This document shows, piece after piece, positions 39,170 through 63,330 of a stretch of 64,000 nucleotides of DNA; positions within the stretch are counted from its first letter, which is position 1, and the number at the start of each line of letters is the position of its first letter. The notes under the pieces are model-generated. The model ran no database searches and was not told where the DNA came from. It was given only the letters and a program-made list of their open reading frames with translations. Both the position numbers and the translations under genes were made by a program. The stretch is from positions 124,001 to 188,000 of IMG/VR virus record IMGVR_UViG_3300009104_001210. One strand, given 5' to 3'.

Positions 39170-39604
39170 GGGGCTGAATGGTTTCGACAGATGCTATTTG
39201 ATAATATAGTGCAACGGAGTTTGAGTAAGACTTGCTATAAAAGACTCACAAACCCAAAATGGCGATAAATCGCTACAAGGGTTGGAAATTGATTGGCATT
39301 TAGCCAATACCGAACAGATGTTTGACACTTATGTTGAACCTGCAAGGGCTTCCCAACCAACTTACGCATACGCATAAGTTACTGAGTTACCTAACACTCG
39401 GTCATAAAATGAGTTAGGTGGTAGGATGGTTGGTATATGTCTTTGAGTAGGAATTAGACGATAAAGAAACCTATCAGTTAAACTCATCTGAGTAAATGAG
39501 GTATGGTGGGTTGTTAGTTGACTACCGATTTGGAAACTAACTAAGTTGTAAATGACTATTTATTAAAAGTAGACTGGACGCGGGTTCGAATCCCGCCAGC
39601 TCCA
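39170..39604 (+). ncRNA. ssrA: tmRNA (one-piece)
   Basis: 5' GGGGCTGAATGGTTTCGAC, 3' T-arm GCGGG-TTCGAAT-CCCGC, acceptor CAGCTCC-A with G3:U70; internal ORF ending TAA 39375-77. Confidence 0.93.
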
Positions 39605-39624
39605 CTAAAATTGAGGAGAATATT

Positions 39625-42245: not shown

Positions 42246-42317
42246 GGCCCCATCGTCTAATGGTGAGGACGTCGCCCTTTCAAGGCGGAGATATGGGTTC
42301 GACTCCCGTTGGGGCTA
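42246..42317 (+). tRNA. tRNA-Glu(TTC)
   Basis: Full cloverleaf; loop CT-TTC-AA; no encoded CCA. Confidence 0.92.
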
Positions 42318-42318
42318 C

Positions 42319-42401
42319 GGGCAGGTAGCAAAGCGGTTAAATGCACCAAACCGTAAGTTTGGCGTCGTGAGACTACGGTGGTTCGAATCCATCCCTGCCC
42401 T
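42319..42401 (+). tRNA. tRNA-Tyr(GTA), atypical C33/G38/U73
   Basis: GGGCAGG/CCTGCCC acceptor, long variable arm, loop CC-GTA-AG. Confidence 0.8.
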
Positions 42402-42402
42402 C

Positions 42403-42475
42403 GGGGCTGTAGCTCATTTGGGAGAGCGCTTCCCTTGCACGGAAGAGGCAGCAGGTTCGATTCCTGTCAGCTCCA
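42403..42475 (+). tRNA. tRNA-Ala(TGC)
   Basis: G3:U70, loop CT-TGC-AC. Confidence 0.93.
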
Positions 42476-42476
42476 C

Positions 42477-43070
42477 ATGAAAAATCTATCTAGATCTGAA
42501 ATAAGAGAAATAAAGAATAACCAATCAGAGTTGTATATGGAAAATGATAACTTTAAAGTTATTATACCATATACACATGATGCAGTTAAGATATATGGTA
42601 AAGGTACTAGTTGGTGTGTTTCTTGGGCAAAAGACGAAGACTATCAGTTTTATAATAAAACAGGTAAAATTCTTTTAATACTTAAAAAGAATGTTCATAT
42701 TAAAGATAATACTGAAATAGATGATGTGTGTTATAAAGTATCTATGTGGATGCCATATCAAAAATATTTGCCACTATATAGAAATTTTGGAAAAGGTGGT
42801 ATAGAAGATATAGCTAAAAGATATGAGTCCGATAAAGAGTTATATAAAAGCGTATTAAATGGTTATGTAAATTCGGTTGATGGTATTACTATTCATAAAA
42901 TAACAGCAGATTTTGAATATTATGATGCTGATGATGCGCATTGTTTTATGCCTGTAAAGTATATAGAAGGAGATAAAGTAGTTTGCATAGATAGAGATTG
43001 GGAATTAGATTGGGAAATATTTGATAGTATAAGATATAAGTATGAATATGAGTGGCAATTTGAAGGATAA
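42477..43070 (+). CDS. Hypothetical protein (GTSWC motif)
   Basis: ATG one base after the tRNA-Ala discriminator; upstream track start lies inside tRNAs. Confidence 0.6.
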   Translation: MKNLSRSEIREIKNNQSELYMENDNFKVIIPYTHDAVKIYGKGTSWCVSWAKDEDYQFYNKTGKILLILKKNVHIKDNTEIDDVCYKVSMWMPYQKYLPLYRNFGKGGIEDIAKRYESDKELYKSVLNGYVNSVDGITIHKITADFEYYDADDAHCFMPVKYIEGDKVVCIDRDWELDWEIFDSIRYKYEYEWQFEG

Positions 43071-43074
43071 TAAT

Positions 43075-43148
43075 GTGCTGGTGCCGGAGTGGTCTAACGG
43101 GGTGGGTTGCAAACCCATTATTCACAGGTTCGAATCCTGTTCAGCACT
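43075..43148 (+). tRNA. tRNA-Cys(GCA)
   Basis: Loop TT-GCA-AA, U73. Confidence 0.9.
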
Positions 43149-43301
43149 CATAACTAAGGAGAAATACCAATGTAATATACAACACTAAATATAAGATTAG
43201 GGTTTAGCAGTACCAATATATAAACTGTCGGTGTTTAAAGTACACCACAAAATTTAGTGTACGGATGGTATCTAAAGAGGGACGGAGGCGGGAAAAAATT
43301 A

Positions 43302-43374
43302 GCCACTTTAGCTCAGTTGGTAGAGCAGCTCACTTGTAATGAGCAGGTCCTCAGTTCGAGTCTGAGAAGTGGCT
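43302..43374 (+). tRNA. tRNA-Thr(TGT)
   Basis: GCCACTT/AAGTGGC acceptor, loop CT-TGT-AA. Confidence 0.93.
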
Positions 43375-43385
43375 CAAAAATAATT

Positions 43386-53001: not shown

Positions 53002-53950
53002 AGATATTTTATATGAAGATCAAGCGTGGAAAACTGTTAAGTTTTTATTAGATGTAAAAAAAATATCTAATGAGGTTGTAGATATGCACAATATAGAATC
53101 TATAAAGCAATTAAATGTTTCAAGTGATGATATATGTTTTGCTAGATTTGGTCATCATTTTGATGATAAGATAGCAACTAATAAAGCATATGATGTATTA
53201 ACTCAAAAATTTAATAAAATATATCCTTCAAAAGACGCATATTATTATTATGATGATAAATTAAAGCAATATGAATTTATGTTAGAAAATGATATACCTT
53301 GTTTGAAAACATATTATGTAGGTAGTAAAGAAGAGATAGAAAAATTAAATATAAAATTTCCTATAGTTACTAAAAAAACTTGGGGGGCTGGAACTGAACA
53401 AGTTAATAAGTGGGATGATTATGAATCTATTGTTGATAATAAAGATACTCGAAGTTGGACAGGGGGATCTATATTTCCATGTTTAGTTCAAGAATATAAA
53501 GATGTAGATTATGATATTAGAGTTAGAATTTTAAACTCTAAAGTTTTCTTTACTAAAAGAATGCACGAATTTAAAACAAAAAATAAAGATAATTTTCCAT
53601 ATGGTACAAAAGAGATTCTTAAAAAAGATAGAATAAAATATCATTTACCACCATATGAAGTTCCTGTAGCATTACCAATAAATGATTTAGCAGAAGTAGA
53701 AGATATTATACCTATAGTAGAAAAATTACATAAGATTCAAAATGAAAAATTGAATAGTAATTTTGTGGTGTGGGATATTCTTAGAACAAATGAAGGAATA
53801 AAAATTCTTGAATTTAGTCATGTTACAGTATATAAAAGTTTTCCACAAATTTATTATGATATAGAATATAAAGAAGCAAATAAATTAACAATAAAAAATC
53901 GTGAACATTTTTTTTATTTGTATAACGAAATATTAAAAGGATTAATATGA
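52982..53950 (+). CDS. RimK-like ATP-grasp ligase
   Basis: DDKLKQY, IPCLKT, FPIVTK, LVQEY, DIRV, WDIL, ILEF. Confidence 0.7.
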   Translation: MKFYLHKDILYEDQAWKTVKFLLDVKKISNEVVDMHNIESIKQLNVSSDDICFARFGHHFDDKIATNKAYDVLTQKFNKIYPSKDAYYYYDDKLKQYEFMLENDIPCLKTYYVGSKEEIEKLNIKFPIVTKKTWGAGTEQVNKWDDYESIVDNKDTRSWTGGSIFPCLVQEYKDVDYDIRVRILNSKVFFTKRMHEFKTKNKDNFPYGTKEILKKDRIKYHLPPYEVPVALPINDLAEVEDIIPIVEKLHKIQNEKLNSNFVVWDILRTNEGIKILEFSHVTVYKSFPQIYYDIEYKEANKLTIKNREHFFYLYNEILKGLI

Positions 53951-55512
53951 AGAAAGTTATTATAGTTGGTGGTGGATTTGCAGGTTACTTAACAGCGTTG
54001 TTTTTAAATAAAAAATTTCCTAAATTAAAAATTGATATAATAAAATCATCAGATAAAGAACAAATTTCTGCTGGAGAACAAACAGGCAAAGAACAACTAC
54101 AATTGTTTTTTGAATCATTAGGAATTGAAGAAACTGAATGGTTTAGTAGAACAAAATCTTTTTTAAAAATAGGTAATTCTTTTGTTGGGTGGGGAAACCG
54201 TGAAAATTTTGATCCTCGAGTTGGTGGACCAGATGTAGTTAATCATAGTTTTGTAATGGAAAATAAATTATTACCTTTACTTAGGAATGGTGGTGGTATG
54301 AAATCCGTAAAGGATTCTATGAAATATAATGATAAGTTACATACTGAATTATATCAAAATAGTTTTTTAGAAACACCCATAGATAATACGGATGATTATA
54401 TAGATAGTTTTAAAAAACACTTTAAAAATAGTTTTTTTAATAGAAAGAATAATAGAGCCATAGCTCATATGCATGATTGGTTAGAGATAGGTAAATTTAT
54501 AGAAACTAAGTTTGATGATAATGTTAAAATAATTACTGATCATATAACTGATGTGGTTGTAGATAAAAAAAATAATACTATAGAATATCTTGTTAATAAA
54601 GATAAAGAAAAGATTAAAGCAGATCACTACGTAGATTGTACAGGTATTAGTAGAATTTTGATTTCTAAACTTAGTAAAGTTGTAGATATTAGTGATGAAT
54701 ATCCTGTAAATAGTGCCGTATTTGGTCCAGTAGAATATATAGATAGAACTAAAGAGATGGTGCCAACCTTATATACTACTGCTTTTAAAAATGGTTATTC
54801 ATTTAAAACACCATTACAACATAGGATAGGAACAGGATATGTCTATTCAGATAAGTATATTAGTAAAGATGAAGCAATAGATGAGATAAATGATTATTGG
54901 GATGGTAGATTTAAGTCAGATCAAGTTAATCATTTAAAATGGACTCCATCTTATGTAGTTAAACCTTTTCAGAAAAATTGTAGCGCTGTAGGATTAGCAG
55001 GACAATTTGATTGTCCAATGGAATCTACAGTATTTACTCAGATATCAACTGCTCTTCAACAATTAGGAAATTATTTAAATAGAGATAATAAATTATTATA
55101 CATGAATCGTTCTGATATAAGAGATGAAGATATGTTAAATTATTGTAATACTTGGACTGAATATACTTTTCATAATACAAGACATTTTAAACAAATGATG
55201 TTTTATACTACAAATAGAGATGATAGCGAATTTTGGAAGAATATTAAAACACTTAATTATTCTGATATTTTTTATAAAAAATTAAGTTTCTTTTTAGACA
55301 ATTCATTTGATTATATAATAGAAAATAGAAATAAGTTTCCTGATTATACTCCACCAACAAATTTTAATATTAATGAAGATAGATTTTGGAGAGTATATCA
55401 AAAAGGATTTAAAGGATATTTTGATTATATGGGAATAAGGGGTGTAGGACATAGTATGATATTAGATGTTCATAATTGGTTAATGATTCTTGCGTATAAA
55501 AAATACATTTAA
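53947..55512 (+). CDS. Tryptophan halogenase-like flavoprotein
   Basis: IVGGGFAG, AGEQT, VDCTG, PLQHRIGTGYVYS, PMESTV. Confidence 0.8.
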   Translation: MKKVIIVGGGFAGYLTALFLNKKFPKLKIDIIKSSDKEQISAGEQTGKEQLQLFFESLGIEETEWFSRTKSFLKIGNSFVGWGNRENFDPRVGGPDVVNHSFVMENKLLPLLRNGGGMKSVKDSMKYNDKLHTELYQNSFLETPIDNTDDYIDSFKKHFKNSFFNRKNNRAIAHMHDWLEIGKFIETKFDDNVKIITDHITDVVVDKKNNTIEYLVNKDKEKIKADHYVDCTGISRILISKLSKVVDISDEYPVNSAVFGPVEYIDRTKEMVPTLYTTAFKNGYSFKTPLQHRIGTGYVYSDKYISKDEAIDEINDYWDGRFKSDQVNHLKWTPSYVVKPFQKNCSAVGLAGQFDCPMESTVFTQISTALQQLGNYLNRDNKLLYMNRSDIRDEDMLNYCNTWTEYTFHNTRHFKQMMFYTTNRDDSEFWKNIKTLNYSDIFYKKLSFFLDNSFDYIIENRNKFPDYTPPTNFNINEDRFWRVYQKGFKGYFDYMGIRGVGHSMILDVHNWLMILAYKKYI

Positions 55513-56018: not shown

Positions 56019-56602
56019 TGAAACTTAAAAAAATATTAATGAGTTGTGTATTACTTTTTGGGAGCTTGTCTCTATCGGGATGTTATACGCAACTCTCTAT
56101 GTTTTATCCTGAACCAGAAATCGAAAATGATGATAGTGAACAGTTCTACGAAACTTATTCAAGAGCAGTTCCAAGACCTCTTAACGTAGGTATTTACGCA
56201 CAAGACGGAGCAGGAACACCATTGAGTTTAGCTTATAGTTCAATGTATAATAGATTTCAACCATACTATGGATTTGGTTATGGTTATGGTAGAAGTGGTT
56301 ACTATAATAGTTACGGAACTTATTATGGATATGATTCATATCTAATAGGTGGATATACAATGTATGTTCCAGTTAATACAGGTGAAAGAAAACCAAGAAC
56401 ATTTTCTACAAGTAGAGATAGTGATGGTTCACCTGGAACAAATTTAAATGTTACAAGAACAAGAAGTTCCAACACTTCACAATCAAGTAATAGTGGTTAT
56501 AGTAATAGTTCGAATGTATCAAGTACAAGAAGTTCTTCAGGGCGCTCGTCAAGTTCTTCCTCAAGTTCTAATTCAGGAAGAAGAGTAACCAAGAGGAATT
56601 AA
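56018..56602 (+). CDS. Lipoprotein with Tyr/Gly-rich and Ser-rich tail
   Basis: LSG-C lipobox. Confidence 0.65.
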   Translation: MKLKKILMSCVLLFGSLSLSGCYTQLSMFYPEPEIENDDSEQFYETYSRAVPRPLNVGIYAQDGAGTPLSLAYSSMYNRFQPYYGFGYGYGRSGYYNSYGTYYGYDSYLIGGYTMYVPVNTGERKPRTFSTSRDSDGSPGTNLNVTRTRSSNTSQSSNSGYSNSSNVSSTRSSSGRSSSSSSSSNSGRRVTKRN

Positions 56603-56603
56603 T

Positions 56604-56894
56604 ATGATATTAGAATTATTATTTAGCTTTGTACTCTTTATTACTGGTGGACATTTAATAGATACTAAATTTAAAGTACATCATTATAGTGATGAGGATT
56701 ATAAGGAAATTTTCTTTCTACAAGCTAAAAAGGAAATTTCTAAGGAATGTATAAAACACTCTGTAGTGGAAACTATTACTTATAAAAATAGTTATCGTGA
56801 AGGTAAGCAACAGAGGGATTATACAATATCTAATCCATATCCAATACAAGATACACCACAACAAGATACTTTTAATAGTCAAAGGAGAAATTAG
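56604..56894 (+). CDS. Hypothetical membrane protein
   Basis: N-terminal TM. Confidence 0.55.
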   Translation: MILELLFSFVLFITGGHLIDTKFKVHHYSDEDYKEIFFLQAKKEISKECIKHSVVETITYKNSYREGKQQRDYTISNPYPIQDTPQQDTFNSQRRN

Positions 56895-56896
56895 TT

Positions 56897-57148
56897 ATGA
56901 GTAGTTTAGCAAAAATAATTGGAGCTATTTTAGCTGCATTAGGGTTAAGTTCTTTAGTATCAGGAAAGAAAAAAGCTGCAGTTAAGAAGATAGATGCCAA
57001 GAAAAAAGTTGTAAAGAAAAAAGTTAAAAAAATTGATAAGGAACTAAAACAGGTTAAGAAAGCACAAACAAAAGCTAAAAAACCTACTAAGAGAAAAAAA
57101 GTAAAAGACTCTGATAAGTTTCTGAAAGATTTTGCAAAGAAAAAATGA
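56897..57148 (+). CDS. Lys-rich membrane-anchored protein
   Basis: N-terminal TM then basic coiled coil. Confidence 0.55.
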   Translation: MSSLAKIIGAILAALGLSSLVSGKKKAAVKKIDAKKKVVKKKVKKIDKELKQVKKAQTKAKKPTKRKKVKDSDKFLKDFAKKK

Positions 57149-57513
57149 AGAAAACAAAAATGATTAGTTGGGTTGTTGGTTTCATGTTATTTTGTGGATG
57201 GGCCGATTTAGTATGGGGTCAAACAACTTTAACTAAAGAACAAGCAGACAATCTTGCAAATAATATACAAGAGTTACAAATCAAAGCGGATTCTCTATCT
57301 ACTTCAGATAGCTTAAAGACTATTGAAATAGATTTACTTAATGAGAAAATTGATTCGTTAGAAGAAGATTTAACTCTTACAGAAAAGAAAGCTAAGTTAG
57401 TTAAGCCAAGTTGGTATGAGAATAAGTGGTTATATTTCGGATATGGTTCAGTACTAACATATGCAGTACTTACACTTGTTGAACAAGCTGGTCACGCTAT
57501 AAATATTTTTTAA
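57145..57513 (+). CDS. Secreted coiled-coil protein with C-terminal TM
   Basis: Signal-like N-terminus, heptads, KPSWYE then TM. Confidence 0.55.
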   Translation: MKKTKMISWVVGFMLFCGWADLVWGQTTLTKEQADNLANNIQELQIKADSLSTSDSLKTIEIDLLNEKIDSLEEDLTLTEKKAKLVKPSWYENKWLYFGYGSVLTYAVLTLVEQAGHAINIF

Positions 57514-57783
57514 ATATTTCTTTCCCTTTAATATAATATTTTTCATATACACTTAAAATCTTTTCAGGAAGATTGTGTTTTAAGCAAGCATATAAAGTTA
57601 AAACAACAATTAACTTTTTTATATGAGGATTTGGTGGCAAAGACATTTCTACTGCCATAATTATACAGATTAGGATCATCAATGTCCAACGTATTTGCTC
57701 TTTTAGTATGTGAAAATTCAATTTTTTTCCTTTTTTTTTAAATAAAATGTATTTTAGACTTTTATGTTTATATATATACATAT

Positions 57784-58210
57784 AAAGTTTTTTGAAAATT
57801 TGAAATGGGAACGCATCAGCAGGCATGTTGATGTGGGGTTGACTGAATAACAGGTTGTGTTAAAGGCTTGTAATGTATCCTAATCCCTCTTGTGGTAGAG
57901 GAGTATTCACCTAAATGTTGGTAATACTGAAAGACATTTCGTGCGGGAGTTTGAGTCAATATAATTAGAAAAAGAAGCCTACTTTTTCACTTCATTGGGA
58001 GTACCCGAAAGGAAATCTCCCTGTAAACTGACCGAATAAACTTTTCTTTGAGAGTTAAGGTAGTTGTTTAGAAGTTGTATTCGCCTCAACGGTGTTAATA
58101 GCATTGAGAGAGAATCGAAGTAACTTTCGGAAATAACGTGTGAAGCTATAAAATCAGAGTGATTCAATGCGAAATGGCATTTTCGCACCCCCAAAATTTC
58201 AAAACTTTTT
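57784..58210 (+). ncRNA. Large structured ncRNA candidate (GOLLD/ROOL-class size and style; family unverified)
   Basis: ORF-poor ~430 nt with a long closing helix and at least 6 internal hairpins, several GNRA-capped. Confidence 0.65.
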
Positions 58211-58407
58211 TACGAGGAAGCCTCTTTATTCTCACTTTTATTATTTTAAATTATACTATCGAATATATGCTTCCTCAAACTTTTAATATGAGGCTCGAAA
58301 ATTTTTAGTTTCCACTTGAAATAAACAACTTAAAAATGAGGGCCTCATATTTTTTAAAAAAAAATGTATTTTTATGAAAAAACATTATATTTATAAGTAA
58401 TAAAGGT

Positions 58408-58434
58408 TTGATATCGCTCAATTGAGGATATCAA
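58408..58434. promoter_or_regulatory. Inverted repeat upstream of hsp20 (operator or 5' RNA hairpin)
   Basis: TTGATATC-G-CTC-AATT-GAG-GATATCAA. Confidence 0.6.
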
Positions 58435-58470
58435 TGTTTGACTAAATAGTAAACAAAACAGGAGAAAACA

Positions 58471-58947
58471 ATGACTAAAATCGCATTTCGTACAAACATC
58501 CCTTACTTCGATAGGGATTCTTTTTTGACCCCGTTTGATAAAATATTCGATCAAATGGTTGAAACTCATTATCCAGAAATAACAAAATCCGTTGGTGTAA
58601 AACCATATGGTAATACTGCATATCCAAAAGTTAACGTATATGAATACGACGACAAAGTGGGTATTGTAGCAGAGATTCCTGGATTAAACAAGAAACAACT
58701 CAAAGTAGATGTTGAAGATGGAACTCTTACAATATCTGGAGATAAACACGGTTCTTTAATGAAAGATCAAGGTGCTAGAGTTATCCGTAAGGAATTAAAG
58801 CAATCTTCATTTAAAAGACAATTTGAATTGGGTGAGTTGTTAGATGGTGAGAACATTTCAGCCAATTTTAAGGATGGAATTTTATCTGTCTCAATTCCTA
58901 AGATGGAGCAGGAACAACCGAAGAAGACTACTGTAAAAATATCCTAA
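58471..58947 (+). CDS. Small heat-shock protein Hsp20
   Basis: YPKVNV, AEIPG, DGTLTISG, FKRQF, ANFKDGILSV. Confidence 0.92.
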   Translation: MTKIAFRTNIPYFDRDSFLTPFDKIFDQMVETHYPEITKSVGVKPYGNTAYPKVNVYEYDDKVGIVAEIPGLNKKQLKVDVEDGTLTISGDKHGSLMKDQGARVIRKELKQSSFKRQFELGELLDGENISANFKDGILSVSIPKMEQEQPKKTTVKIS

Positions 58948-59148
58948 ATGAAGGAAATGATACGCATCGGAGATGATGTGTATGTTCTACTTGGAACTGT
59001 ATCGGTAAGTTCTGGTTACACAATTGATGAACTAAAAAATATGTATTCACTTGCGGATACAGTTCTGAGAAAGAATGATTTGTGGTATATTACCCATAAA
59101 ACCATAGTTGCTGAATTTGAAGATATTATAGATAAAAAAGACAGTTAA
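58948..59148 (+). CDS. Hypothetical protein
   Basis: TAAATG-coupled. Confidence 0.55.
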   Translation: MKEMIRIGDDVYVLLGTVSVSSGYTIDELKNMYSLADTVLRKNDLWYITHKTIVAEFEDIIDKKDS

Positions 59149-59205
59149 GTAAATATATATTCTATTTATAATTGTATTAATAAACAGATATTAAAGGAGA
59201 ATTTT

Positions 59206-59391
59206 GTGGATGATTTTTTTGATAAATTATTTCAAAAAATAGCAGAATTTCATGAAAGAGAAATTCATATGAGTCAATCTTTAGCAGAGAATGATGAAGA
59301 CATACCAATGTATGTTTTAGAGAAGGCAAGACAAGATTTTCATCTTAAAGAATATTTGTGGTTTAATAGAGATAAGATACCTAGTGCATAA
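59206..59391 (+). CDS. Hypothetical protein
   Basis: AAGGAG SD, GTG start. Confidence 0.55.
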   Translation: MDDFFDKLFQKIAEFHEREIHMSQSLAENDEDIPMYVLEKARQDFHLKEYLWFNRDKIPSA

Positions 59392-59408
59392 TAACATTAA
59401 GGAGTTAC

Positions 59409-59588
59409 ATGAAATATCAACGTACTGTAGAAGAAAGACTTGATCAATTATTACAAGTTATTGAAAGACTCATTGAAAGAGTAACAGATAATACTATTGA
59501 TAGAGATGATCTTTCTAATCAATTAAGTAATTTACATGAAAGATTAGAACAAGTACATGGGTTAGTAGAATTGGAAGATGAAGATTAG
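59409..59588 (+). CDS. Small coiled-coil protein (59 aa, not in ORF track)
   Basis: AAGGAG SD, heptad pattern. Confidence 0.55.
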   Translation: MKYQRTVEERLDQLLQVIERLIERVTDNTIDRDDLSNQLSNLHERLEQVHGLVELEDED

Positions 59589-60537: not shown

Positions 60538-63330
60538 ATGAAAAACAAACGTAATCTAATCTCATTGGTAATAACATTTCTAATGCCTATGTTCATTTAT
60601 GGACAAAGTGTTAGTGGTACGGTTGCTGATGAGGCAGGGAATCCTTTGGCTGGAGCTAATGTAGTTGTACAAGGAACTGATTTGGGTGCCGCTTCTTTGG
60701 AAGATGGTACTTATTCGATTAAAATCGGAGAAGGTTCACATACACTAATAGCTTCTGTTATCGGGTATGAATCATCTTCACAAACAGTAGATGTTAGTGG
60801 AGATATTAGTCTCGACTTTAGCTTAGCGGTTTCCGCAGTCGAGATGTCAGCATTGGAAGTTTTGGCTTCCCGTGCAGGCGAAAAAACACCTGTTGCTTAT
60901 ACTACGGTAGAAAAAGCAGATATGGAATTCCGTCTTGGTAGTCAAGACCTTCCAATGGCGCTTAATCTAACACCATCAGTATATGCTACGCAACAAGGTG
61001 GTGGTGCGGGTGATGCTCGTATCAATGTTCGAGGTTTTAATCAACGGAATGTAGCAGTAATGATTAATGGAGTACCACAAAATGATATGGAAAACGGTTG
61101 GGTTTATTGGTCCAATTGGGATGGTGTAGCAGATGCTGCACATTCTATCCAGATGCAACGTGGTTTAAGTGCTGTTAATTTAGCTACACCTTCCATTGGT
61201 GGAACTATGAACATAATTACAGACCCTACCTCTCACATAAAGGGTGGTAAGGTAAAACAAGAAGTTGGTGCTGGTGATTTTCTTAAAACTACAGTAAACT
61301 ATAATACTGGCTTGATAGGTGATAAATTTGCCTTGAGTGGTACAGTAGTACGTAAAACTGGTGGTGGAATCATTGACAAAACGTGGACAGATGCTTGGGC
61401 ATATTACTTTGGTGCAAGTTACGCACTAAATGCTGATAACCGATTTGAATTATACGCAATCGGTGCGCCACAGCGACACGCACACAATCTATATAAACAG
61501 AATATTGGTGCATATGATGCTGATTTTGCTGCAAGTATAGATGGATATGATACTGAAGCACTTGGTGAAGATGGTAAGTTCAAGGATGTTGGACGTACAT
61601 TTAATCAAAATTGGTCTCCAGTAGACCCATCATATACAGGTAAACAATACTATTATATGTATGGTGCTAAAACAGTAGCAAGACACGATCCCAACTTTAT
61701 TAACGAAAGAGAAAATTTCTTTCACAAGCCTTTAGTAAACCTAAATCATTTTCTAACTATTAATGACAAAACAATGTTAAGTTCAGTATTGTATTGGAGT
61801 GGTGGTTCAGGTGGTGGTACAGGTACTTATGGTAGGATTCCTACTATGGATGCTGATGGTAATCTTGGTGATGATGACTATAAATTTTATTATGGTCGTT
61901 CTCCCTGGACACGTGATTGGAATGCTCTTATCGCTATGAATAGTGGTGATTCTGATACAGTTTATGTAGACAAAAGAGTAATCACACGCACACATGGTAT
62001 TGATAATAATCAATCTGTAGGTATTTTGAGAAATAGCATTAATCGTCAGAATACATATGGCCTTATTTCTAAACTTAATTATGATGTAAGTGATGAACTT
62101 CAATTACAATTAGGTATAGATTGGAGAACTGCTGGTATAGAACACGCACGTGAAGTACGTGATCTAATGGGTGGTGATTATTATGTGGATTATGCTGATG
62201 ATAATGTACCTGATGGTAAAAGAGTTGGATTAGGTGATATAATCGCTTATCATAACTCAACCACAGTTGATTGGTTAGGTGGATTCTTACAAGGAGCTTA
62301 TGCTTCAGGTCCACTTTCAGCCTATGGTATGGTAGGATTATCACAGATTGGATATTCATATCAAGACCATTTTACTGTAGCCGATGAGAAGATTGTAGCA
62401 GATCCTATTTCCACTTTACAATGGAAAGGTGGGGCAATGTATGATGTTACTGATAACGTTTCAGTTTTTGGTAATTTTGGTATTGTTGAAAAGCCACCAA
62501 TTATGGATAATGTAATCTATTATGATGGTACGGTTGCTTCAGATCCTGCAAATGAAAGATTTGTAAGTTCAGAAGCTGGTGCTCACTACGCGACGGATAA
62601 AGTAGCAGTTAAAGTGTCTGCATATAATACAGATTGGAAAGACAGAAACCTTACCAAATCTGTAACAAGCGGACAAGGTTCAAGCGGTGATACTGATGTG
62701 ATTTTCCTTTCGGGGATAAATCAGAATCATAAAGGTGTTGAAGTTGAAGCTTCTACACAAGTACTTGATGTACTTAACTTACAAGCTATAGTAAGTCTTG
62801 GTACTTGGAAGTTTGTAGGTGATGCAGCAGGTAACTATCAAGAAGATGAGTTTAACGAAGAAGGTCAAGTTATCGGACAGACAACTACACCTTATTCTTA
62901 CGCACTTGATGGTTTGTTTGTTGGTGATATGCCTCAAACATCTTACGCACTTGTTGGAACGCTTACACCAATTAAAGGTCTAAAAATGCAAGCAGTATAC
63001 AAACAGTATGATAATAATTATGCTGATTGGAGTCCTGACGCTCGTGAGTATGATGGCTCAGATGCTGGTGCAGATAGAGAACAAGTATGGATGGCACCTG
63101 GATATTCCAGAGTTGACTTACATGCTTCATATGCTCTACCTTCAATTGGTGGTATGGATTTTACCGCATTTGCTCATGTATTTAATGCAACAGATGCAAC
63201 ATACATTCAAGATGCAGTAGATCATAGTCAGTATAATAGCTACGGAGATAAAACTCACGCAGCACACAACGCTGAAGTTTTTCTTGGAACACCAAGATAC
63301 TTTAACGCAGGAATTTCTGTAAATTTCTAA
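60538..63330 (+). CDS. TonB-dependent outer-membrane receptor with N-terminal CarboxypepD_reg-like domain
   Basis: Signal peptide, VSGTV..GNPLAGANVVV, plug (INVRGFNQRNVAVMINGVP), beta-barrel ending in Phe. Confidence 0.92.
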   Translation: MKNKRNLISLVITFLMPMFIYGQSVSGTVADEAGNPLAGANVVVQGTDLGAASLEDGTYSIKIGEGSHTLIASVIGYESSSQTVDVSGDISLDFSLAVSAVEMSALEVLASRAGEKTPVAYTTVEKADMEFRLGSQDLPMALNLTPSVYATQQGGGAGDARINVRGFNQRNVAVMINGVPQNDMENGWVYWSNWDGVADAAHSIQMQRGLSAVNLATPSIGGTMNIITDPTSHIKGGKVKQEVGAGDFLKTTVNYNTGLIGDKFALSGTVVRKTGGGIIDKTWTDAWAYYFGASYALNADNRFELYAIGAPQRHAHNLYKQNIGAYDADFAASIDGYDTEALGEDGKFKDVGRTFNQNWSPVDPSYTGKQYYYMYGAKTVARHDPNFINERENFFHKPLVNLNHFLTINDKTMLSSVLYWSGGSGGGTGTYGRIPTMDADGNLGDDDYKFYYGRSPWTRDWNALIAMNSGDSDTVYVDKRVITRTHGIDNNQSVGILRNSINRQNTYGLISKLNYDVSDELQLQLGIDWRTAGIEHAREVRDLMGGDYYVDYADDNVPDGKRVGLGDIIAYHNSTTVDWLGGFLQGAYASGPLSAYGMVGLSQIGYSYQDHFTVADEKIVADPISTLQWKGGAMYDVTDNVSVFGNFGIVEKPPIMDNVIYYDGTVASDPANERFVSSEAGAHYATDKVAVKVSAYNTDWKDRNLTKSVTSGQGSSGDTDVIFLSGINQNHKGVEVEASTQVLDVLNLQAIVSLGTWKFVGDAAGNYQEDEFNEEGQVIGQTTTPYSYALDGLFVGDMPQTSYALVGTLTPIKGLKMQAVYKQYDNNYADWSPDAREYDGSDAGADREQVWMAPGYSRVDLHASYALPSIGGMDFTAFAHVFNATDATYIQDAVDHSQYNSYGDKTHAAHNAEVFLGTPRYFNAGISVNF

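Follow-up and report, generated by a model that had tools for sequence, protein, structure and literature searches.

Is a stretch of about 430 nt in the genome of an uncultured 216-kb marine phage an ornate non-coding RNA, and if so, to which family does it belong? The element lies at positions 57784-58210 on the + strand of a 64-kb window, the whole stretch of DNA that was analyzed here (IMG/VR record IMGVR_UViG_3300009104_001210, positions 124,001 to 188,000). An earlier note, made from the sequence alone, had listed a closing helix, six hairpins and one long-range pairing, and had suggested a compact relative of the cage-forming GOLLD and ROOL RNAs or a new RNA class. We found that the interval encodes a real, abundantly expressed non-coding RNA of ~380-400 nt, which represents a divergent, two-core version of the manA family (RF01745). 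Ordinary members of this family were reported in 2026 to self-assemble into RNA cages.

Conservation and covariation of the structured RNA

The observation made in the earlier note was confirmed, since the listed closing helix and hairpins were all located on the + strand of the window. The minimum free energy of the + strand is -111.4 kcal/mol, corresponding to z = -2.5 against dinucleotide shuffles. Stronger evidence comes from the comparison with 29 non-redundant homologues (<98% identical) from marine viral and metagenome contigs. In a structure-blind MAFFT alignment of these sequences, 60 well-aligned base pairs were 95.5% canonical, compared to 79.4 +/- 0.6% in column shuffles and 33-48% with slid partners. 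Compensatory changes were found in 39 of these pairs, compared to 25.9 +/- 2.1 (maximum 31) in the shuffles; both values exceeded every one of 500 shuffles. The hairpins that are misaligned by MAFFT re-fold at the same place in every homologue with different stem sequences. A tandem-motif scan of metagenome contigs returned many unrelated stretches, such as termite-gut repeats; these were removed with nhmmer, and Rfam confirmed that six of them are not manA.

Of the individual pairings, the closing helix (57784-57802 and 58192-58208) can form in all 29 sequences (-6 to -13 kcal/mol, mean z = -2.6), although its register shifts between lineages and it shows only a few compensations. In contrast, the proposed long-range pair GTTGA..GAATA/TATTC..TCAAC was rejected, as it has little covariation support (one compensatory pair in one arm, none in the other) and competes with two local hairpins that do covary. 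The orientation of the RNA is supported by 182 G.U cells against 42 A.C cells.

The unit extends beyond 57784-58210 on both sides, with a promoter-like block at 57740-57783 and a terminator at 58286-58355. The parts of the region, all on the + strand, are as follows.

57740-57783 (+), promoter-like block (A-tract, -35-like TTTTAGAC, A/T-rich -10 region), with an inferred transcription start near 57786. Homologues carry a conserved TTGAGA/TTGGGA - N16-17 - TATTAT/TATAAT with an upstream A-tract at the same place (up to 10 of 12 consensus matches). The copy in the window is more degenerate and lacks the small 5' hairpin of its relatives.
57784-57806 (+), 5' arm of the closing helix P0, with the most conserved block of the element (GTTTTTTGAAAATT, 57787-57800), which is nearly invariant in the 29 homologues and unique in the window; it is not a repeated genome motif.
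57813-57834 (+), hairpin P1a of the outer core (GCATCAGCA-GGCA-TGTTGATGT), which re-folds in every homologue with more than 10 different stem sequences.
57835-57838 (+), 5' strand of P2 (GGGG), pairing with 58188-58191, so that the enclosing helix spans both cores; 98% canonical, with G-C changing to A-U in step between lineages.
57840-57870 (+), invariant junction motif TGACTGAATAA, matching the manA consensus UGaCUGAAUAA, and hairpin P3a (57851-57870), whose stem is 92% canonical with 4 compensatory pairs.
57878-57948 (+), outer four-way junction of P4a (57878-81/57945-48), P5a (57886-57901, CCTCT/AGAGG, loop TGTGGT), P6a (57902-57928) and P7a (57929-57940, loop GACA). The same closed three-hairpin junction is predicted in most homologues with different stem sequences; P7a is 84% canonical with 3 compensatory pairs.
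57968-57988 (+), hairpin P8a (GAAAAAG/CTTTTTC, loop AAGCCTA), with a covarying stem.
57990-57995 (+), 5' strand of the long-range helix PL (CTTCAT), which pairs with 58140-58145 and closes the inserted second core; 98% canonical, 5 of 6 pairs compensatory.
57997-58021 (+), hairpin P1b of the inner core (GGGAG..CTCCC), with a GAAA tetraloop on a short inner stem. Seven different stem versions occur, for example GGGAG/CTCCC, GTGGG/CCCAC, GTTGG/CCAAC and GTAAG/CTTAC.
58029-58056 (+), second junction motif TGACCGAATAA and hairpin P3b (58039-58056), which is 100% canonical with 3 compensatory pairs; the flanking AC/GT pair changes A-U to G-C or G.U. Its loop (58046-58051) is the 5' strand of pseudoknot PK.
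58064-58136 (+), inner four-way junction of P4b (58064-69/58131-36; 6 of 6 pairs compensatory), P5b (58071-82, loop GTTGTA; 100% canonical), P6b (58085-58108) and P7b (58115-58130, containing CGAAG/TTTCG, loop TAAC; 96% canonical, 5 compensatory pairs).
58140-58145 (+), 3' strand of PL (GTGAAG).
58154-58159 (+), 3' strand of PK (TCAGAG), pairing with the P3b loop; 99% canonical with 4 compensatory pairs and the strongest loop pairing in an all-against-all loop test.
58168-58187 (+), hairpin P9 (TGCGAAA/TTTCGCA, loop TGGCAT), with a covarying stem.
58188-58191 (+), 3' strand of P2 (CCCC).
58192-58209 (+), 3' arm of P0, which can pair with the 5' arm in all homologues.
58214-58276 (+), spacer specific to the window with an 8-bp inverted repeat (GAGGAAGC / GCTTCCTC), absent from the other homologues, in which the terminator follows within about 30 nt.
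58286-58355 (+), long interrupted terminator hairpin and T-run, with a conserved inner part (TTTAGTTTCCAC ... ACTTAAAAA).
58356-58400 (+), second promoter-like block before hsp20, which repeats AAATGTATTTT from 57745; these are the only two exact + strand copies in the window.
58471-58947 (+), downstream gene for an Hsp20/IbpA-type small heat-shock protein (Pfam HSP20, E = 1.8e-20; PHROG 432).

Relationship to manA and nested architecture

The interpretation given in the earlier note was only partly supported: the element is a large, ornate, phage-encoded RNA whose transcript exists and whose fold is backed by covariation, but it is neither a compact relative of GOLLD or ROOL nor a new class. 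A permissive scan of all 4227 Rfam models (E up to 10) over 57400-58500 on both strands, a comparison that had been proposed beforehand, gave no GOLLD, ROOL, OLE, RNase P or group I/II match, and neither GOLLD nor ROOL was found at the gathering cut-off over the whole window. The only meaningful matches were two adjacent manA hits at 57997-58193 (44.7 bits, E = 5e-10) and 57814-57985 (18.8 bits), whereas weak URE2_IRES, SraC/RyeA and sok matches are chance hits. Both manA scores lie below the curated cut-off of 55.2 bits. However, the second halves of alignable homologues score 61.6-73.4 bits; in relatives the element scores 29-73 bits, compared to 155-197 bits for ordinary members.

Covariation shows that the two cores are nested rather than simply arranged in tandem. 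The outer part of the ~380-nt core (about 57813-58192) has all nine helices of the manA family, namely P1a, the enclosing helix P2, the UGACUGAAUAA junction with P3a, the four-way junction of P4a-P7a, P8a and P9. A second manA-like core, consisting of P1b, UGACCGAAUAA with P3b, and the P4b-P7b junction, is inserted between P8 and P9, closed by PL and tied down by PK between the P3b loop and the strand following PL. In line with this, the Rfam alignment of a 72-bit homologue has the enclosing helix deleted and the outer P8 stem non-canonical in the second half. A sequence-only HMM built from 100 ordinary manA RNAs was too insensitive to compare the outer core, the inner core and a core with the insert removed (all below 20 bits), so that the nesting rests on covariation alone. 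By inspection, no convincing partner of the P3a loop equivalent to PK was found.

The element shares with manA (PMC2864571) the UGACYGAAUAA junction followed by a hairpin and UAAGGU, which occurs twice here (57840-57876 and 58029-58061) with the motif invariant in the 29 homologues, the GGGG/CCCC helix placed after a 5' hairpin (consensus GGGaG/CuCCC), a closed three-hairpin junction whose first loop is GUGGU, and two 3' hairpins, P8 and P9, with complementary loops. Further shared traits are a marine phage setting, a sigma70-like promoter directly upstream and an ibpA/hsp20 gene downstream. The inner core has no enclosing helix of its own. While the junction architecture is present twice, the consensus loops (GUGGUG in P5, GNRA in P6, UAACCA in P7) are only partly kept: L5a is UGUGGU and L5b GUUGUA, neither P6 has a GNRA loop, and L7a and L7b are GACA and UAAC. 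The second core, PL, PK, the 5'/3' closing helix and the dedicated terminator set the element apart from ordinary members, and all 88 ordinary manA loci examined in IMG/VR have a single core. The next ORF lies about 190-280 nt away behind a terminator (about 280 nt in the window, on the same strand, also behind the second promoter-like block), whereas ordinary manA RNAs are followed by an ORF at a median distance of about 60 nt.

The host phage group differs as well. Its gp32 is nearest to those of Microcystis phage Mel-JY01 and the Flavobacterium immuto phages, cultured phages that have a short intergenic region before gp32 and no manA anywhere. A blastn search of 50,697 GenBank phage records with the window copy and a clade II copy, run in distant mode, found nothing, and neither did a megablast search with 14 kb around the element.

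Transcription of the element

In four metatranscriptomes from three studies, contigs identical to the window lie only on 57820-58193, at depth 4-150, and stop at 58192/58193, just before the 3' arm of P0. The rest of the surrounding 3-kb stretch, including the terminator, is essentially uncovered, with only two or three short, depth-1 pieces of contigs that mostly do not fit. Six RNA runs hold the element, of which only one holds 14% of the hsp20 stretch. As these data are assembled contigs without strand or true ends, the transcript boundaries and a processing at P0 remain inferences.

The genome layout suggests that the RNA is a gene of its own. The region 58286-58350 is predicted to fold at -19.3 kcal/mol and is followed by T6, and a hairpin with U-run was found in 24 of 29 homologues, with a covarying outer stem. 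Relatives have the same kind of promoter-like block between the terminator and gp32 as is found here before hsp20. Ordinary manA RNAs also start right at sigma70-type promoters. A simple sigma70/terminator scan gave nothing useful and missed the terminator because of its 8-nt loop limit, and TATATTATW is not enriched in the window as a general promoter motif.

Loop complementarity and possible self-assembly

A July 2026 preprint (bioRxiv 10.64898/2026.07.01.735769) shows by cryo-EM that manA RNAs form decamers and a 60-mer cage in vitro through L5-L7', L8-L9' and related contacts. The element keeps one of the kissing-loop complementarities used there, and the cage analogy drawn for GOLLD and ROOL may therefore hold through a different family. 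In the element, the P8a and P9 loops stay complementary through changes on both sides (ACGAUU/AAUCGU, AUGAUU/AAUCAU, CCGAUU/AAUUGG, AACCA/UGGUU, AGCC/GGCU), and 0 of 2000 and 0 of 400 permutations reached the observed value, although these tests ignore relatedness among the sequences. In the window itself the match is only 3 bp (GCC/GGC), and the pairing could be intramolecular. The Rfam consensus loops UaCUguA (L8) and uacAguA (L9) are likewise complementary; the assignment of the published loop numbers to our helices is inferred from this consensus. The inner L5b and L7b loops are also mutually complementary (AGUUGU/GUAACU) as read from the sequences, whereas the outer L7 is GACA instead of UAACCA, so that the L5-L7' contact is not obviously kept in the outer core. 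The inner P3 loop is used in the intramolecular pseudoknot, while in one published variant the P3 loop makes an intermolecular L3-L8' contact.

Taken together, we consider it more likely than not, with moderate confidence, that the RNA itself is the product: a stand-alone, stable and probably self-assembling structural RNA, which would associate with copies of itself through kissing P8 and P9 loops, rather than an aptamer controlling hsp20. The fold and its conservation, the strand, the transcript with its relative abundance, and the covarying complementarity of the P8 and P9 loops are established by our data. In contrast, the promoter, the transcript ends, processing at P0, multimerization and any cellular role as scaffold, compartment or sequestration device are inferred, and multimerization in particular is extrapolated from shorter relatives scoring far higher than this 45-bit RNA. 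The location upstream of a gene also speaks against this reading: the element always precedes a gene, and ordinary manA RNAs sit before an ORF as cis-regulators do.

A more far-reaching, tentative and on present evidence rather unlikely possibility is that the double manA RNA is a natural, covalently doubled protomer that assembles into cage-like particles in infected cells, with PK and PL representing a captured inter-subunit interface. Its own promoter and terminator and its accumulation without the neighbouring mRNA would then mean that manA-class RNAs in general are phage-made structural RNAs, forming a third cage-forming family beside ROOL and GOLLD, rather than riboswitches. manA has been an orphan riboswitch candidate since 2010. 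The locus adds to this a natural two-core architecture, which shows how the fold tolerates a whole extra core between P8 and P9 and is useful for structural work and RNA design, evidence from genome layout for a separate RNA gene with its own promoter, closing helix and terminator, and evidence from environmental RNA data that the core accumulates far above its neighbouring mRNAs. These features make it directly testable whether manA-class RNAs are regulators or structural products of phage infection.

Alternative explanations

The best surviving alternative, which we regard as possible but unlikely, is a cis-acting riboswitch or attenuator that would sense a metabolite or condition and set read-through of the terminator into hsp20, or into gp32-recA-exonuclease in relatives. 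manA was proposed as a riboswitch candidate upstream of mannose/fructose, nucleotide, ibpA-chaperone and photosynthesis genes (PMC2864571), and an ibpA/hsp20 gene follows here. Moreover, the element precedes gp32 in 25 of 29 homologues even though the upstream genes differ, a conserved terminator follows it, highly conserved unpaired junction nucleotides look like a binding pocket, and two similar domains recall tandem aptamers. Tandem-aptamer riboswitches such as the glycine riboswitch likewise combine two homologous structured domains joined by inter-domain pairing, but here the domains are nested instead of side by side. However, the terminator does not overlap the core, lying about 95 nt away beyond a lineage-specific spacer in the window, and by inspection we found no conserved alternative pairing between the two. 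The second promoter-like block and a separate conserved leader hairpin lie between terminator and gene, two hsp20-linked relatives have no terminator at all, and the RNA contigs cover the core but neither the terminator nor, essentially, the gene. Some ordinary manA RNAs are followed by a tRNA gene rather than an ORF, and no ligand is known for manA in the papers returned by our literature searches. Since nearly all genes in the window are on the + strand, co-orientation carries no weight.

A processive antitermination element like HK022 put, or a 5' stabilizing leader, by which the nascent structure would modify RNA polymerase or protect the transcript so that early transcription passes the strong terminator, is improbable. 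The order of promoter, structured RNA, strong terminator and genes, and the promoter-proximal start of ordinary manA RNAs, would fit. However, no read-through RNA is seen in the four metatranscriptomes, the downstream gene has its own promoter-like block, there is no similarity to the put or EAR families in Rfam, and a ~380-nt, two-core fold with a pseudoknot is far more elaborate than known antiterminator RNAs.

A relationship to GOLLD or ROOL, or an entirely new class, is very unlikely given the absence of any GOLLD or ROOL match even at E up to 10 and the clear homology to manA (shared junction motif, helix order and homologues above the family cut-off), although the element resembles ROOL and GOLLD in being a large phage-encoded RNA product, possibly multimeric (it is smaller), and one relative lies just after a cluster of eight tRNAs.

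Finally, a small protein gene or a DNA-level element such as a replication origin can practically be dismissed: despite Table-11 ORFs of 47-109 aa overlapping on the - strand, the proximity to gp32/recA in relatives and A/T-rich repeats in the flanks, no ORF is conserved in frame or strand (longest stop-free runs 43-79 aa, in varying frames and strands), the 109-aa - strand ORF (57497-57826) overlapping the 5' end has no family match, and RNA libraries hold the core and not its flanks, while the compensatory changes and the excess of G.U over A.C are RNA signatures.

Genomic setting and identity of the element

The window, bases 124001-188000 of a 216,422-bp IMG/VR virus record that is rated as complete by CheckV, has about 30% G+C, and nearly all of its genes are located on the + strand. 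It carries a cluster of five tRNA genes (Glu, Tyr, Ala, Cys, Thr) at 42246-43375 (+), about 14 kb upstream of the element, and a tmRNA-like gene at 39170-39607 (+), which matched the Rfam tmRNA model at 77.5 bits (E = 2e-28) over the full model length but with large insertions, and which was not called by ARAGORN. Additionally, we found unusual phage cargo at 53947-55512 and 60538-63330 (+). One gene encodes a tryptophan-halogenase-family flavoenzyme (Pfam E = 2e-58), and the other a 930-aa protein with CarboxypepD_reg and TonB-receptor Plug domains (SusC-like), which hints at a Bacteroidota host. The element lies in a 957-nt gap between a 122-aa ORF that ends at 57513 and an Hsp20/IbpA gene at 58471-58947.

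The observation in the earlier note, a large structured RNA candidate with a series of hairpins, holds, and every sequence string it listed is present at its position. Thermodynamics alone is weak evidence, since the + strand minimum free energy is -111.4 kcal/mol (z = -2.5) but the - strand also gives z = -2.8. The G+C content rises to 37-40% inside the element, compared to 22-29% in the surrounding spacer. At gathering thresholds, Rfam reported nothing in the interval. With permissive thresholds, the only meaningful matches were two adjacent full-length alignments to manA (RF01745), at 57997-58193 with 44.7 bits (E = 5e-10) and at 57814-57985 with 18.8 bits, both below the cut-off of 55.2 bits. 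The GOLLD, ROOL, OLE, RNase P and group I/II models did not match. The interpretation in the note was only partly supported, in that the element is a large non-coding RNA but neither a compact relative of GOLLD or ROOL nor a new class; it is a divergent variant of manA. The manA motif has been described as a marine and cyanophage motif located in potential 5' UTRs of mannose/fructose, nucleotide-synthesis, ibpA-chaperone and photosynthesis genes (Weinberg et al., PMC2864571), and an ibpA-type gene follows here.

Homologues of the element

In order to obtain homologues, we searched viral and metagenome contigs with a pattern of two TGACYGAATAA motifs spaced 165-195 nt apart and with a second pattern that includes the 5' block. 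nhmmer kept 55 full-length homologues and discarded unrelated pattern hits. Among the latter, three termite-gut and sediment metagenome contigs (L028, L060 and L076) hold three to seven matches each of TGACYGAATAA pairs spaced about 200 nt apart; these are not manA (no Rfam match) and represent an unexplained repeat. At 98% identity, the homologues collapsed to 32 sequences, of which 29 are full length. The MAFFT alignment of these sequences contains roughly three clades that are 50-75% identical to the window, plus an outlier (homologue L007), while homologue L013 is identical to the window. In clades II and III, the second half passes the manA cut-off at 61-73 bits, whereas the first half gives only 17-28 bits.

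Covariation supports a nested double fold

We analyzed the alignment by an unbiased scan for stacked covarying columns, followed by explicit counts of base pairs. Helices are numbered as in the manA family, with the suffixes a and b for the outer and the inner core.

Helices supported by the alignment, with window coordinates (+ strand) and support.
P2: 57835-38 / 58188-91; 98% canonical, G-C changes to A-U
P3a: 57851-70; 92% canonical, 4 compensatory pairs
P7a: 57929-40; 84% canonical, 3 compensatory pairs
PL (long-range helix closing the inserted core): 57990-95 / 58140-45; 98% canonical, 5 of 6 compensatory
P3b: 58039-56; 100% canonical
P4b: 58064-69 / 58131-36; 6 of 6 compensatory
P5b: 58071-82; 100% canonical
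P6b: 58085-58108; 82% canonical, 1 compensatory pair
P7b: 58115-30; 96% canonical, 5 compensatory pairs
PK (pseudoknot): 58046-51 / 58154-59; 99% canonical, 4 compensatory pairs
P9: 58168-87; 81% canonical, 4 compensatory pairs

Taken together, 60 pairs are 95.5% canonical, compared to 79.4 +/- 0.6% in shuffles and 33-48% with slid partners, and 39 pairs are compensatory, compared to 25.9 +/- 2.1 in shuffles. P1a, P4a-P7a, P8a, P1b and P9 are misaligned by MAFFT because their loop lengths differ. Each of them nevertheless re-folds at the same position in every sequence with many different stem sequences. G.U cells outnumber A.C cells 182 to 42, so the + strand is the RNA strand. No ORF is conserved.

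These data indicate a nested rather than a tandem arrangement. The GGGG that follows P1a pairs with the CCCC at the far 3' end, while the second core has no enclosing helix of its own and sits inside PL, between P8a and P9. The Rfam alignment of a 72-bit relative shows the same from the other side, in that for the second half the enclosing helix is deleted and the outer P8 stem is non-canonical. The element is therefore an outer manA fold with all nine helices, plus an inserted P1/P3/P4-P7 core fixed by PL and PK. In contrast, the long-range pair GTTGA..GAATA/TATTC..TCAAC proposed in the earlier note conflicts with P5b and P6b and has little covariation support, with one compensatory pair in one arm and none in the other.

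All 29 sequences can additionally pair a GAAAAU-type 5' segment with an AUUUUC-type segment just after the CCCC (closing helix P0), with duplex energies of -6 to -13 kcal/mol and a mean z of -2.6. The register of this helix shifts between lineages, and a few changes are compensatory, for example GAAAAUU/AAUUUUC against GAAAAUA/UAUUUUC. The 5' block GTTTTTTGAAAATT is more conserved than pairing would require, and it is unique in the window.

Organization of the putative transcription unit

Upstream of the element, the homologues share an A-tract, TTGAGA/TTGGGA, a 16-17-nt spacer and TATTAT/TATAAT, usually followed by a small variable hairpin that precedes the conserved 5' block. The copy in the window (57740-57783) is more degenerate and has lost that hairpin. 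Downstream, 24 of 29 homologues have a long interrupted hairpin plus a U-run, whose outer stem covaries and whose inner part is conserved in clades I and II. In the window, this terminator lies at 58286-58355, beyond a lineage-specific spacer. It is followed by a second promoter-like block. The 11-mer AAATGTATTTT, which occurs after an A-tract at 57745-57755 and 58362-58372 (+), flanks the RNA unit on both sides, and these are the only exact + strand copies in the 64 kb. The two blocks look like duplicated promoter modules.

A conserved leader hairpin then precedes the gene. In the window, it is located in the hsp20 leader at 58408-58434 (+) (TTGATATC-GCTCAATTGAGG-ATATCAA). In the two other hsp20-linked relatives (L141 and L113), the inner GCTCA..TGAGG is kept while the outer stem changes on both sides, and the hairpin could be an operator or an RNA thermometer. 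The downstream gene is gp32, followed by a RecA/UvsX-like recombinase and a 5'-3' exonuclease, in 25 of 29 homologues. It is hsp20 in the window, L141 and L113, and an 84-aa ORF in L007. In L004, L005, L009, L017 and other homologues, a conserved hairpin (GTATCAAGG-TTATA-CTTGATAC type) about 60-80 nt before gp32 is followed by an A/U-rich leader, an arrangement that recalls the autoregulatory operator of T4 gene 32. The window's own gp32 lies about 78 kb upstream, at record position 103764-104300, with only 92 nt of upstream spacer and no manA match.

The core is represented in metatranscriptomes

Six metatranscriptome runs hold 21-48% of the sampled words of an 801-nt stretch around the element, whereas only one RNA run holds 14% of the hsp20 stretch. 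We compared the contigs of four RNA runs, from three studies, with the region 56500-59500. The contigs identical to the window cover only 57820-58193, at a word depth of 4-150. Apart from two or three short, depth-1 pieces of contigs that mostly do not fit, the remaining ~2.6 kb is uncovered, including both P0 arms, the terminator and hsp20. DNA contamination would have covered the flanks as well, so the signal is RNA. Two runs from the source study have identical contigs ending at 58192 and 58193, and one contig of a close variant joins a sequencing adapter to the position equivalent to about 57805. As contigs carry no strand and do not give true ends, a mature species of about 57805-58193, with P0 acting as a processing or stabilising stem, is a suggestion only.

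Comparison with ordinary manA RNAs and their assemblies

For comparison, we searched IMG/VR with GGGAGTGACTGAATAA, which hits at least 120 stretches. All 88 distinct loci with sufficient flanks have a single core, in which the 3' CYCCC lies 159-172 nt after the GGGAG. The next ORF starts a median of 231 nt after the GGGAG, which is about 60 nt after the 3' end of the motif, and only 18 loci have a terminator-like hairpin before the ORF. A textbook TTGACA-N17-TATAAT promoter ends a few bases before P1. In the 60 nt upstream of the ordinary manA loci L171-L188, the -35 box often sits in the loop of a hairpin that is followed by a T-run, a promoter/stem-loop cassette arrangement. Several ordinary manA RNAs (L181, L182, L184 and L186) are directly followed by a conserved hairpin (AGACCTAAGATGCAACT...GGTCTTTTT), which, like the terminator of the double element, is terminator-like with a conserved interior. 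The eight loci tested score 155-197 bits.

A July 2026 preprint (bioRxiv 10.64898/2026.07.01.735769) reports cryo-EM structures of manA RNAs, which form pentamer-based octamers and decamers, and a 60-subunit icosahedral-like cage. The subunits are held by L5-L7', L8-L9' and L3-L8' kissing loops and an L6-P6' GNRA-receptor contact. The preprint mentions neither tandem variants nor in-cell data. In the Rfam consensus, L8 (UaCUguA) and L9 (uacAguA) are complementary, as are L5 (GUGGUG) and L7 (uaACCA), which fixes, by inference, the numbering used here. In the double element, the P8a and P9 loops remain complementary through changes on both sides.

Pairing of the P8a loop with the P9 loop (P8a / P9).
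Clade II: ACGAUU / AAUCGU
L147: AUGAUU / AAUCAU
L007: CCGAUU / AAUUGG
L158, L161, L150: AACCA / UGGUU
L141, L145, L031: AGCC / GGCU
Window: GCC / GGC

Matched loop pairs beat all 2000 and all 400 permutations, and in an all-against-all loop test this pair ranks just behind the PK positive control. The inner L5b and L7b loops are also mutually complementary, but they are invariant, so covariation cannot test them.

A stand-alone RNA or a cis-regulator

Several lines of evidence point to an RNA that is itself the product, although of undefined biological role, namely the separate promoter and terminator, the second promoter-like block before the gene, the lack of any overlap between terminator and core, the accumulation of the core without neighbouring mRNA, and the retained kissing-loop complementarity. 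The RNA is probably self-associating. While the fold, the strand, the presence of the core in RNA data and the covarying P8a-P9 loop complementarity are shown by our analysis, promoter function, the mature ends, the role of P0 and self-association are inferred.

A cis-regulatory role is the main alternative, and it is supported by the persistent position of the element in front of gp32 or hsp20 and by the 5'-UTR position of ordinary manA RNAs. However, two of the eight ordinary loci that were scored, L174 344-627 (-) and L186 3525-3834 (+), with 169 and 197 bits, are followed within 14-50 nt by a tRNA gene instead of an ORF, which is hard to reconcile with translational cis-regulation.
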